A stretch of DNA of 63,848 nucleotides from Thecamonas trahens ATCC 50062. Its lineage: Eukaryota; Protista; Apusomonadida. This document shows, piece after piece, positions 22,998 to 27,100 of the stretch. A model generated the notes under the pieces. It was given only the letters and a program-made list of their open reading frames with translations, ran no database searches and was not told the origin of the DNA. The DNA lies in contig NW_013657668.1 in assembly GCF_000142905.1 (NCBI RefSeq), forward strand, positions 482,644-546,491, in the 5' to 3' direction. The translations under genes and the position numbers were made by a program. Every line of letters starts with the position of its first letter. Within the stretch, counting starts at the first letter, position 1.

Positions 22998-23340
22998 AGA
23001 CAGAGCGGCGAGCGGTGACGACGGGTGAGGTGTTTGCAAGCGTGCTGGCATGTGCGCCTACGTGTGTGTGTGTATGCACCGGTTGTGGTGATGTGGCGTG
23101 GGGGGTGCGAGTGTTGACGACACAAATTGTTGGGAGGGTCGCAAGTGGGTGGGGGGTGGGGGGTGAGGAGCTGACATTTTTTCTTCTGTGATGCGGCCGA
23201 ATGCTTCTCTGGGTGGTATGAACGGAGCGGAGTGCCTCGGAGCGGACGGTACGAGAGGTAGCTTGACTCAGGTCATGTCGCTCCACCGACGACAAGTGGC
23301 GGGCAACGAGTTGGGCAGGGACGCGCCACCGGCACCCATT

Positions 23341-24150
23341 ATGGGCGTACCGGGTGCGGCGGCGCGGTATGTGCGGAACGGCGGCGGAGAGGCGACGCAA
23401 AAGTCGGTGCGGCGGACAGCCTTTGCTGAGCTCCGCATCTGGCTGGTCATCGTCGCCATCCTTCATGCGGTACAGGCGATAGTCTTTCTCGCTCGAGGAG
23501 GAATAGCAAGCGTGCCGGTGACTGCGAGCTTTTCCAACGCTGCGCCTGGTCTTCTCGCTATCCCTCAGGCCAAAGTGCTCTTCTCGGTCAATCTCGCCTC
23601 GACAACTGCTTTGTACGTCGGTCTCGAGGCCGCCGGCCTTGCTCTCCTCGCTTCTGTTGGCTTTGACCGTTATTCCACGCAGATCCGTCGTCGAGCCGGC
23701 TCGCTTCGCTGGCTGGCCATGGGTATACCGGCTGTCATCATGTACTTGCTCATCGCCATGATTGCCGGTGTGACGGATCTTGCGGCGCTGCTCATGCTCA
23801 CGTCGTCGATGGTGGCATGCTTTGCGCTCGGTTCTGCAGCAGAGGCCAACGTCCGGACGACTGGCAGTCTTTCTTGGACTTTGTTCGGGTTTGGCTGCTT
23901 TGCCGGCGGCATGCCGTGGCTGGTGATTGTTCTCTATGCCGCCATGGCCGGCGGCGCGTACCCGAGCTTTCTCGTGGCGCTGGTAGCTCTTCAGATGGTC
24001 GCCACGCTTGCCTTTCCGCTCAACTTGGCCATCACCAACTCACGGTTCGGGTGGTCTGCACTCACAGGCGAAGTCATCTTTGTCCTTATCTCGCTCATGG
24101 CCAAGACGCTTCTGGCGTGGATGGTGTTTGGCTTCGCGTCGCTAGAGTAG
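23341..24150 (+). CDS. Heliorhodopsin, divergent at the Schiff-base counterion
   Basis: 269 aa with seven hydrophobic helices and HeR signatures: LHAVQA (TM1), PVT..F..A.PG loop, RY....R...LRW, M..LIA.IAGVTD..AL, LG...E, FGCFAGGMPW, PSF, GE..F..ISLMAKTLLAWMVFG (retinal Lys255). The basic N-terminus fits the inverted topology. Confidence 0.9.
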   Translation: MGVPGAAARYVRNGGGEATQKSVRRTAFAELRIWLVIVAILHAVQAIVFLARGGIASVPVTASFSNAAPGLLAIPQAKVLFSVNLASTTALYVGLEAAGLALLASVGFDRYSTQIRRRAGSLRWLAMGIPAVIMYLLIAMIAGVTDLAALLMLTSSMVACFALGSAAEANVRTTGSLSWTLFGFGCFAGGMPWLVIVLYAAMAGGAYPSFLVALVALQMVATLAFPLNLAITNSRFGWSALTGEVIFVLISLMAKTLLAWMVFGFASLE

Positions 24151-24161
24151 CAGTACCGAGC

Positions 24162-27100
24162 TCAGTTTGACGACGAGGAGCCGACCGAGCCGATGGCGGG
24201 AGCGGGAGCGGGAGCGCTCCCGTTCGACCCGACTATGGATGGCGGCGGCGTGTGCTTGAACAAGCTGGAGTCCATGCCGACACCGGTGATGATGCTGCTG
24301 GAGCAGCCCGAGTCGGCTATGGTGTCGAGAGAGGCAACCTGAGCAGAGGCTTCGTGCCGGTGGCCAAGATCGGCGAGCAGGACGCTCTCGCCATCGCCCA
24401 TCCGGCTTTGCGTTGCCGGGTCGAGGTCGGCGGCGTCATCAAAGCCGTCAGCGTTGGCAAACACGCCCGAGACGTAAAATTCATCTGCCTCGACAGCCTT
24501 CTCGTTGCGGACCATGCGAAGGATGTCAATGGCGTTGCCGAGGACAATGGCGAGGACGTTGACGATGATGCCGACAGCGACGGCGATGCGCCGTGACTCG
24601 CGCTCGTCAAAGGTACCGCCGTAGAGAACGAGGCTGGTGGCGGCGAGGACGATGCCGGCGACCGCATTGTGAAAGCCGGCGGCGTACGGCCGGGCGAGCG
24701 CAAGATGGACGAGTGCGGCGACGAGGATAACAAGCGCGGTGTTGGCCTTGCCCTCGTCGGCAAAGACAAAGGTCATGGCGATGACAACGCCGGCCTTGCG
24801 GGCCATGATTGCCGCCTCGAACCACCATGTGTTGCCGGTGAAACGGCCAACAAGAAAGCCGTACTGGAGCTGAAAGGCCACTGGATCGAGGTGCCGGCGC
24901 TTCTGCCACAAGACGGCGACGACGGCTGCCGGGACGCCGATCCCGTAGCCGGCGACTGCCAGGAGACCCGGGGCAAATAGGCCGCGCCACCACGCGCTGT
25001 TGTAGCAGCTCCGAGCCGGGTCTGCGTCCATGACCCAACGGCGGCTCTCGTCGCGGCGGCAGCCAAAGACGGCAAACGAGGCCCGCGCCAGCGGGAGGTA
25101 GAGCAGGACGAGGATCTGGAAGACAGTGCGGCCGTAGGCACCGACGAGCCGGCGGCCATTGATGGCGGCCAGCAAGCCAAGCCCGGCTTGACGCCCGACG
25201 ACGATTGCGCAAGCGCCGATGCCGACAATGATGGCCGCCAACAGCGGGAGCGCGAGCGTGAGGACCCACTTGAGGACCCAGACGTCGGCGTTGGTGACAA
25301 CGGCGCACTCGGGTGCGGTGAGGCCAAGATCGACGTTCAGCGCCGATGCGAGGTCAAAGTAGAGCTGGGCAAAATCACCCCAGTCGAGGTCGAGCTTACC
25401 GTACAGCGCCGAGATCTGAAGGCCGTTGAGGCCGATCATGGCCGCTGCAAACTTGTACCGCATGCTCTCGGCGAGATTGAAGCCAAGGAGCATCCAGCAG
25501 ACAGCTAGGATGCCGAGGACAAGCAGCGTGATGACGAGCGCGTTCCGCCCGCCGTTACACTTGTGGCACACCGAGCCGAGCCGATAGTACCCACGGTCGC
25601 ACTCGGCGCACAGCCGAGCGGTGTAGCCTGATGAACAGGTGCCATCGCCGGCGCACGCGCGCTCGTTCGGGCACGCCACAAAGAGGGTCGAGCCAGCAGC
25701 GTCCGGGAAGAAGCCCGGTGCCGCGACGGGCGGCTCGAGCTCACCGGCGCACACGCCGCCGCGCGGGCAGAGCTCGCACGCCGTGTCGACAGTCATGCTC
25801 GGGCTCCAGAACCCGGACTTGCAGACGCAGACAGAGCCGGATCCGTCGGTCGACGCGTTGCTCGGCGTCCGGAACGTGTTTTCCGGGCAACTCAGAGTGC
25901 CAGTGCAGCTCGCGAGGCTGCCGTCGCCTGGCGAGGTGGTACCGGACGGGCAGAGCGCGCAGGCAATGACATCAACGCCGTCGATGGTGCGGGCGACGCC
26001 ACCCTCACCCGCTGCGCACCCGCCGACCGTCATGCTCGCACGGAGCGGAGAAACAGGCATGCCGACGGTGGCTCCCGATGCGGCCAGGCGCGCGTCGACG
26101 CCCAGCGCCACGTCGACCGCCAGCGGGATGTTGGTCTCGGCGCCAGCGGTGACGTAGACAGCAGCGGTGGGAGAGGCGACTGCCGTTGTCACCAGTGGGG
26201 TTGTTGCCACGCCGCCGACGAGAGCGGAGCTCTGCGGAGTGTCGTAGCTCAGCACAAGCGTGACGTGCGGCTCGATCAGACTCTGGCCAAACATGTCACG
26301 GCCGCGGATGGCACCTTCGATGGCTTCGCCCGATGGGACAGAAGTCCGCGGAAGGCTGGCCCACTCGAGCGTTGCCAAAGGGCCGGCGATCTTGCCGGCG
26401 CCGGTCTCCACCAGCGCGGACCAGGCGTCGGGCGCAATGCGGAGCCAAGGGAGGCCGACAGACGAGGCCAGGCTCGGCGCAAAGCCGTCAGCGGCGCAGA
26501 CAAAGGCATGCTTAGAGCTGCTTCGCCATGATGCAGCGGCGCCGCGCATAGCAATGGAAGCGCCGCAGGCAAAGACAGCATCGCCAAACAAAGAAGCGCT
26601 GTTGTCGGTGAGGGCAACATCGACGAGCTCGATGCTGGGGATGGCGGTCGGGCCGGCAGAGGCGGCGGCGGCACCACGAGCCATGGGCACGTCCACGCTA
26701 GCGGTGGCGCGCAGCGTCTCGGCGACAAGCTGGGGATCGACGACAGCGATGCCGCCGCCCGAACTGGCGACGTTGTTGGCAAAGATAGCGGACGTGACGG
26801 AGAGTGTGCTGCCGGCGTCGGCAAGGATGCCGCCACCGAGTCCATTGCCGGCTGCGACGTTGGCGGTGATTTGCGGCGCGGCGTCGAGATTGGCGATGGC
26901 CGTCGTACCGACAAAGAGACCACCGCCACCGGTGTTGGCGGCAGTGCAGGCATTGATGAGCGTGTTGGCGTGAGCGCGAAGGTGTGCACTGCCGACGATG
27001 GCCATCCCACCGCCCTGCTCGCCGGCGGTGCAGTGAGCGAGGGTCAGATCGGTAGTGGTGACCCGGGTGCCGGCGCCAGTGGCAAAGAGCGCCCGCCGCG

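Follow-up and report, generated by a model that had tools for sequence, protein, structure and literature searches.

The window analysed here, a stretch of 63,848 nucleotides from the protist Thecamonas trahens ATCC 50062 (contig NW_013657668.1, positions 482,644-546,491), carries at positions 23341-24150 of the forward strand a gene for a 269-residue heliorhodopsin, for which the name TtHeR2 is used here. Among the homologues sampled, TtHeR2 is the sole protein that keeps the retinal lysine of the seventh transmembrane helix (TM7), lacks any acid in TM3 and has an acid at the position of Ser76 in TM2 of the heliorhodopsin 48C12. The best single reading of this one orphan sequence is that the TM2 residue, Glu96, may be a displaced counterion, moved from TM3 (generic position 3.45) to TM2 (2.54), to which a probability of about 0.45 is given. 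To our knowledge, every characterised heliorhodopsin features one TM3 glutamate as its sole counterion. When about 40,000 rhodopsin sequences were surveyed (November 2026), E3.45 was still listed as a heliorhodopsin hallmark (PMC13739731). If true, the reading would thus describe the first counterion displacement in the heliorhodopsin family, with the lysine kept and the only nearby carboxylate on TM2, and would offer a natural test of how colour, Schiff-base pKa and the route of proton transfer in this scaffold depend on where the counterion is placed. A spectroscopic bench test would be cheap and quick.

TtHeR2 is an intact, very divergent heliorhodopsin with the seven-helix fold. The Pfam profile Heliorhodopsin (PF18761) matches it in one piece over positions 1-239 of 242 with an E-value of 2.3e-65 and 220.8 bits (cut-off 26.7), chance being excluded as an explanation, and phmmer retrieves the solved structures of TaHeR (E 1e-28) and 48C12 (E 1e-20). 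An AlphaFold2 model, for which an alignment of 92 rows was used, reached a mean predicted local distance difference test (pLDDT) value of 92.3 and a predicted template-modelling score (pTM) of 0.87, and features seven helices together with the AB beta-hairpin. When this model was compared by Foldseek, TaHeR and 48C12 ranked first with TM-scores of 0.78-0.91 (for TaHeR 0.84/0.91 at a root-mean-square deviation of 1.8-1.9 Å), far ahead of type-1 rhodopsins, which score just 0.5-0.6. Five Arg or Lys residues among the N-terminal 30 would agree, by the positive-inside rule, with the inverted topology of heliorhodopsins, in which the N-terminus is cytoplasmic.

The residues were mapped by phmmer, by MAFFT with 150 homologues and by MAFFT with 7 homologues, which gave the same columns in all three cases, and the key codons were checked directly in the raw nucleotide sequence. 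In the phmmer alignments to the solved structures, which are free of gaps in TM2, TM3 and TM7, TM3 of TtHeR2 reads RWLAMGIPAVIM over RWVEYSLSSSVM in 48C12 and RWFEYSISASFM in TaHeR, TM2 reads LEAAGL over LSALFH and ISATAH, respectively, and TM7 reads SLMAK over SLVAK. Changed with respect to 48C12 are Glu96 (Ser76), Leu100 (His80), Ala126 (Glu107), Met127 (Tyr108), Pro130 (Ser111), Leu35 (Asn16) and Gly120 (Asn101), and in TM3 the replacements, besides those at the counterion and at Y108 and S111, include Val132 (S113). Kept are His42 (His23), Arg123 and Trp124 (Arg104, Trp105), Glu168 (Glu149), Glu244 (Glu230), Ser251 (Ser237) and Lys255 (Lys241). Position 76 is the generic 2.54 because His80 is 2.58. 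The features concerned are located in the window as follows:

23341 to 24150, forward strand: second heliorhodopsin coding sequence of Thecamonas trahens, complete, a single exon without intron, 269 codons plus TAG
23464 to 23466, forward strand: codon of His42, equivalent of 48C12 His23 (generic 1.50), retained
23593 to 23652, forward strand: TM2, residues 85-104 in the model, with the inward face Tyr92, Glu96 and Leu100 (F72, S76 and H80)
23626 to 23628, forward strand: codon GAG of Glu96, position of 48C12 Ser76 (generic 2.54)
23638 to 23640, forward strand: codon CTT of Leu100, position of 48C12 His80 (generic 2.58)
23698 to 23700, forward strand: codon of Gly120, position of 48C12 Asn101
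23701 to 23763, forward strand: TM3, residues 121-141, with Arg123, Trp124 and Met134 (M115) kept and Ala126, Met127, Pro130 and Val132 in place of the counterion, Y108, S111 and S113
23716 to 23718, forward strand: codon GCC of Ala126, counterion position Glu107 (generic 3.45)
23992 to 23994, forward strand: codon of Gln218, column of 48C12 Leu202 and V2HeR3 Glu191
24058 to 24141, forward strand: TM7, residues 240-267, with Glu244 (E230), Ser251 (S237, 7.46), Lys255 (K241, 7.50) and Trp260 (W246)
24103 to 24105, forward strand: codon AAG of Lys255, the retinal-binding lysine by alignment

An earlier, sequence-only reading of this DNA had assigned the gene to the heliorhodopsins on the basis of seven helices, heliorhodopsin motifs and an intact SLMAK with Lys255, and the Pfam match, the alignments and the codon check bear this out. 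The replacements of Glu107, Ser76 and His80 that it had listed recur in the three agreeing alignments, its retained TM1 His, TM3 Arg/Trp, TM4-end Glu and TM7 Glu correspond to His42, Arg123, Trp124, Glu168 and Glu244, and its reference motifs match the 48C12 sequence in the phmmer alignment. Likewise, its residue numbering and the eukaryotic origin are correct, and the check that it had proposed, an alignment to Pfam and to the 48C12 and TaHeR sequences, places the column of Glu96 on the inward face of TM2.

TtHeR2 belongs to the same Pfam family and has the same fold as 48C12 and TaHeR (PDB 6SU3, 6UH3, 6IS6), with which it shares, in addition to the kept residues named above, P172/W173, W246, D127 and Y179, whereas it is only 24-28% identical to them and differs further by N138M and F206T. 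With regard to the features by which heliorhodopsins are recognised, the retinal lysine in TM7 (K241, 7.50) is present as Lys255 and the serine replacing Asp at 7.46 (S237) as Ser251, whereas the single TM3 Glu counterion (E107, 3.45) is Ala126 and the histidine pair H23 (1.50) and H80 (2.58) is reduced to His42, with Leu100 at H80. Lys255 stands in a secure TM7 alignment, so that TtHeR2 is no member of the class defined by the lack of a TM7 lysine. Nor does it have the Glu of V2HeR3-type transport at the 48C12 Leu202 column, which is Gln218; in V2HeR3 this residue, Glu191, is the hallmark of proton-transporting viral heliorhodopsins, and E191Q abolishes the photocurrent (PMC9448325). Gln218 is a polar residue in the extracellular half of TM6, which is hydrophobic apart from it, and its column holds Glu in 6 and Tyr in 17 homologues.

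The rarity of the arrangement was determined by an HMMER scan of 1.84 billion protein cluster representatives with TtHeR2, which gave 664 matches, the best 149 of which formed, together with the paralogue from the same genome, a sample of 150 sequences (125 near full length). Glu occupies position 107 in 121 of the 150 and His position 80 in 126 (79 of the 83 that are full length and retain the lysine), and 131 sequences feature Ser, Ala or Thr at position 76. No acid was found at position 76 in the reliably aligned sequences of this sample; P0053, the sole homologue with Glu there, is a truncated fragment whose alignment begins at that very column. The 83 full-length lysine-retaining homologues feature at position 107 Glu in 80 cases, Asp in two and Gln in one, and where residue 107 is non-acidic, which is so in 23 full-length homologues, the lysine is lost as well in 22, the TM7 alignment being unambiguous. 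Within the sample, loss of the TM3 acid would accordingly seem normally to accompany the abandonment of retinal binding, and the combination of Glu96, Ala126 and Lys255 in one protein is rare. In the literature searched, no natural heliorhodopsin with a neutral residue 3.45 and a helix-2 carboxylate was found described, in agreement with the novelty that had been supposed for this variant class. The same search found no mention of the second Thecamonas heliorhodopsin, TtHeR2, and Kovalev et al. name just A0A0L0D8K8 for this organism (PMC7049168).

The one exception to the joint loss, P0101 (302 amino acids, from Logan and ENA assemblies), keeps the lysine and features Gln107-Glu108 in TM3 and Glu79-Tyr80 in TM2, and may be another case, of a different type, in which the counterion region was rearranged. 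The retinal lysine is lacking in about 38 of the 121 full-length nearest homologues (e.g., P0040, P0042, P0100, P0116, P0134, P0140, P0143, P0149). Its loss is strongly coupled to that of Glu107, in whose place Gly or Ser usually stands, and the framework of R104/W105, E149, E230 and W246 is retained, which points to a sizeable set of putatively pigment-free heliorhodopsin-like proteins.

The changes in TtHeR2 are concentrated around the Schiff base. Out of 28 columns, each at least 80% conserved in lysine-retaining homologues, 20 are retained, and the eight losses comprise four conservative hydrophobic swaps and four radical changes (H80L, N101G, E107A, Y108M), all of which belong to the cavity lining around the Schiff base in the definition of Kovalev et al. 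(PMC7049168). Altogether, seven of the 11 residues forming or stabilising this cavity differ (N16L, S76E, H80L, N101G, E107A, Y108M, S111P), with H23, Y92, E230 and S237 remaining. The sequence-only reading had spoken of a paired loss and gain; the loss at 107 and the gain at 76 stand, whereas the restriction to a pair does not, as the change extends to the other cavity positions as well as to N138M and F206T.

The reading of Glu96 as a displaced counterion builds on the published structures. In 48C12, Glu107 and Ser237 are the direct bonding partners of the Schiff base, and the side chain of Glu107 is in turn stabilised by Ser76 and Ser111 (PMC7049168), with Ser76 donating a hydrogen bond to the carboxylate (PMC7049168, PMC6951262, PMC9726877). 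Calculations combining quantum mechanics and molecular mechanics place Ser76 between Glu107 and His23, and the exchange S76A moves the absorption maximum by 6 nm (PMC9726877); in TaHeR E108D, S78 flips and bonds the shortened counterion (bioRxiv 10.1101/2020.06.24.168591). From this published bonding it follows that residue 76 is directed towards the carboxylate of the counterion and lies within a few ångströms of the Schiff base. In the alignment, residues 92, 96 and 100 of TtHeR2 belong to the conserved side of TM2 that faces inward, at a spacing of i, i+4 and i+8, and on steric grounds the three side-chain heavy-atom positions removed by E107A would be matched by about as many added by S76E from the opposite wall. 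Moreover, a buried Glu which is unique among reliably aligned homologues would be hard to keep without a charged partner. A Glu at generic 2.54 beside the Schiff base is also known as E3 of channelrhodopsins (ChR2 Glu90; PMC13739731), so other rhodopsins place a functional Glu at this site, and anion channelrhodopsins resemble TtHeR2 in lacking a TM3 carboxylate (PMC12557545). Nevertheless, channelrhodopsins are of another family, have the opposite membrane orientation and feature Asp at 7.46, where TtHeR2 has Ser, and the TtHeR2 sequence implies no channel activity. Thus, the counterion switch gains support from the Ser76-Glu107 bonding, the inward-face position, the lack of any other acid at 76 and the coupling between the 107 acid and the lysine.

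Provided that retinal is bound and that Glu96 reaches the Schiff base in its charged form, as we infer, its carboxylate would extend into the space vacated by the Glu-to-Ala change at 126 and would be the only counterion and primary proton acceptor of the protonated retinal Schiff base. Proton exchange would then be simpler, taking place between the Schiff base and Glu96 and possibly His42, and the Schiff-base pKa would be expected to be lower and the absorption maximum to be shifted. The concept has a counterpart in animal opsins, where a counterion displacement from Glu181 to Glu113 is known, both states being established experimentally; in both cases the counterion would move to another structural element, whereas the proteins are unrelated and the move in TtHeR2 is deduced from one sequence. 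For 48C12, a proton relay from Glu107 to His80 was proposed (PMC9726877), and the side chain of Asn101 was shown to separate the Schiff-base cavity from the cytoplasm (PMC7049168). Due to N16L, H80L, N101G, Y108M and S111P, neither the water-filled cavity of 48C12 nor this relay can operate as described in TtHeR2, and with the relay gone, any proton that leaves the Schiff base would be bound to remain on Glu96 or His42.

Several observations weigh against a displaced counterion. The terminal branch of TtHeR2 is the longest in the tree, and in the scan of 1.84 billion cluster representatives no orthologue was found, just TtHeR2's own fragment lying below E 1e-30 and the next-best match being 32-35% identical, so that the Glu96/Ala126 pair stands in a single orphan sequence. 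Word-indexed searches with TtHeR2 alone or with an alignment of eight sequences of its clade returned, among the matches listed, the protein itself and a few distant eukaryote heliorhodopsins, which are weak blanks, and a metagenome-contig scan with the protein found no relative. Three residues of the retinal pocket are altered (Y108M, N138M, F206T), all at sites of high conservation in the lysine-retaining homologues (Tyr108 in 78 of 83, Phe206 in 64 of 83), and the fraction of conserved columns retained, 0.71, compares with means of 0.70 in lysine-less and 0.91 in lysine-retaining homologues. The GC content at third codon positions of TtHeR2 (23341-24147) is 0.68, as against 0.77 and 0.78 in the flanking genes and 0.82 in the other heliorhodopsin of the genome, which is compatible with low expression or relaxed selection. 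The contigs from RNA libraries described below are no proof of transcription, as DNA carry-over is possible. Furthermore, channelrhodopsin-2 features a protonated Glu at 2.54 in its dark state, and the Glu in TtHeR2 need not be charged either.

As the cavity changes go beyond a pair and the retinal pocket is altered, a decay of the photochemistry is a live rival. TtHeR2 could be an inert protein following its lysine-less relatives, with the photochemical core lost, Lys255 not yet replaced and Glu96 incidental, a course of events which we regard as unlikely. The joint loss of acid and lysine among the homologues is in line with it, as are the altered pocket, the retention score close to the lysine-less mean and the weak codon bias. 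Likeness is found in TM3, where lysine-less homologues (e.g., P0040, P0100, P0143) have lost the 107 acid, feature G, S or A at 107 and G at 109, often without Y108, their motif RW-x-G/S-x-G being similar to RWLAMG in TtHeR2; they differ in having neither the retinal lysine nor an acid at 76, whereas TtHeR2 has Lys255 and Ser251. A per-column likelihood comparison of lysine-retaining and lysine-less profiles places TtHeR2 at 8.2 bits between the groups, a crude measure with widely overlapping distributions. Nevertheless, Lys255, Ser251, His42 and Met134 were kept along the longest branch of the tree, Ser251 being present in just 14 of 41 lysine-less relatives, 239 of 242 profile positions are covered by an intact frame whose helices are free of indels, the structure model is very confident, and a buried acid without a role would be selected against. 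If no retinal is bound, TtHeR2 would represent an intermediate stage towards the lysine-less heliorhodopsin-like proteins which are common among the homologues here.

The remaining alternatives are realistic in view of the published behaviour of uncompensated counterion mutants. 48C12 E107A and E107Q as well as V2HeR3 E105Q combine, like TtHeR2, a neutral residue 3.45 with a kept lysine, and the effect is a 410 nm form, chloride rescue or lost visible absorption; these mutants keep Ser at 76 and a polar cavity, whereas TtHeR2 features Glu at 76 and a hydrophobic one. Both the ultraviolet (UV) and the anion-stabilised state which the sequence-only reading had offered as alternatives match what was published for 48C12 E107A, which absorbs at 410 nm when salt is low and at 550 nm once chloride is present (PMC6951262).

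A UV or violet pigment would require that Glu96 is neutral or too far away, so that the Schiff base would lack its proton in the dark state and absorb at about 400 nm, turning the protein into a short-wavelength sensor. This alternative, which we hold to be rather improbable, can draw on the 410 nm species of 48C12 E107A, which is the sole form present when salt is low or pH is high (PMC6951262), on V2HeR3 E105Q, which is without visible absorption (PMC9448325), and on the polar, proton-stabilising cavity lining, which is largely hydrophobic in TtHeR2. Furthermore, Thecamonas trahens already uses TtApuR, a UV-absorbing anion channel with an unprotonated Schiff base, and blue light is avoided by apusomonads (PMC12557545). 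Still, a UV pigment hardly explains the buried, inward-facing Glu on TM2, and Ser251 and His42 are kept.

The least convincing alternative is an anion-dependent pigment. A halide or small anion in the Glu-to-Ala space would be the counterion there, with Glu96 protonated or aiding the binding. The heliorhodopsin cavity opens to the cytoplasm, where chloride is normally low. Besides, a charged carboxylate at 96 would repel the anion, and where 48C12 and TaHeR solvate the anion with polar residues and waters, TtHeR2 has Leu, Leu and Met; we consider such a pigment very improbable, even though 48C12 E107A and E107Q bind anions which keep the Schiff base protonated (Singh et al., 2019, cited in PMC9385722; PMC6951262), E107A regains with chloride the wild-type absorption maximum of 550 nm (PMC6951262, PMC9385722), the TaHeR cavity binds chloride at low pH (PMC9385722), chloride counterions are described for coral opsins (PMC12401545), and Gly120, in place of the Asn101 plug, could give the cavity an opening to the cytoplasm.

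With Glu96 as displaced counterion, a further-reaching role is conceivable, to which only a small likelihood is given. TtHeR2 might be a working pigment that exchanges its Schiff-base proton with the helix-2 Glu at the E3 site, and with the Asn101 seal reduced to Gly, either light might control the passage of protons or ions to the cytoplasm or the protein might be a sensor switched by pH or UV, in both cases contributing to the avoidance of short wavelengths by apusomonads.

The phylogenetic position was examined in a quick tree of 126 rows and a careful tree of 48 rows. TtHeR2 falls within a clade of eukaryote heliorhodopsins, including those of Corallochytrium, Mastigamoeba balamuthi and Cyanophora paradoxa, with a support of 99 in the former and 100/99 in the latter, and its placement beside the Corallochytrium and Mastigamoeba sequences is weaker (88/60). 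All seven other members of this clade, which are 23-27% identical to TtHeR2, feature A, S or T at 76 together with H80, E107 and the lysine. In an approximately unbiased (AU) test on the 48 rows, the two Thecamonas heliorhodopsins as sisters were not rejected (p 0.18). Hence, despite the clade support of 100/99, an old eukaryote lineage and a duplicate arising in the genome are both compatible with the test as possible origins of TtHeR2.

The genome of Thecamonas trahens (28.7 Mb in 131 contigs) was scanned for related genes. The other heliorhodopsin, A0A0L0D8K8 (AMSG_02642, XP_013759543), is located at G000:C15:543506-544213 (locus L001:1315-2223, forward strand) and has an N-terminal extension of about 90 residues rich in Ser and Thr. 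It is of the same genome and family as TtHeR2, whereas it is canonical in its residues (A76, D79, H80, E107 and the lysine), reaches 303 bits against the Pfam profile compared to 221, and groups with other homologues in both trees. Furthermore, the genome features two type-1 rhodopsin domains, one of them within an open frame of 1080 amino acids, and one RPE65-type carotenoid oxygenase, the three being listed jointly as:

G000:C11:8724-9374, G000:C51:111714-112379 and G000:C15:136793-138232: type-1 rhodopsin domains and RPE65-type oxygenase

These sequences bring the rhodopsin-type genes of Thecamonas trahens to no fewer than four, next to a candidate enzyme for retinal formation, a cellular context which is counted in favour of the main reading of TtHeR2, as are the RNA-library pieces described below. 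With TtHeR2, three kinds of rhodopsin are present in this organism, the light avoidance of which is being actively studied.

TtHeR2 is a resident eukaryotic gene. Its open reading frame is open throughout 23188-24150 on the forward strand, with the ATG at 23341 giving 269 amino acids and additional in-frame ATGs upstream at 23191 and 23275, and the identical 269-residue protein is present in NCBI, UniRef and EukProt without a functional name. The GC content of the locus equals that of the surrounding DNA. Bacterial contamination was ruled out by the contig of 563 kb, the local GC content and the eukaryotic neighbours, and a pseudogene by the whole domain being free of frameshifts, stops and helix indels despite the deep divergence.

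Pieces 99-100% identical to TtHeR2 occur in RNA-library contigs from three independent environmental studies and one further run, which is compatible with transcription of the gene in nature. A seawater metatranscriptome contig (run X3, 23549-23786) carries G>A at 23641, resulting in A101T, with the codons of Glu96 and Ala126 unchanged. Contig k141_255923 of the ENA assembly ERZ27245236 is identical over the 639 coding bases which it carries, with one difference downstream, and holds no evolutionary information. Thecamonas-like sequence is also found in subsurface and marine RNA libraries.

The neighbours of TtHeR2 are a divergently transcribed gene for a leucine-rich repeat (LRR) protein and a convergent gene for a DUF7630 membrane protein of 1036 amino acids, and an examination of these two gave no lead on the function of TtHeR2. 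The stop codons of TtHeR2 (24148-24150) and of the convergent DUF7630 gene (24162-24164) are separated by 11 bases, and the 3' untranslated regions of both genes must therefore overlap.

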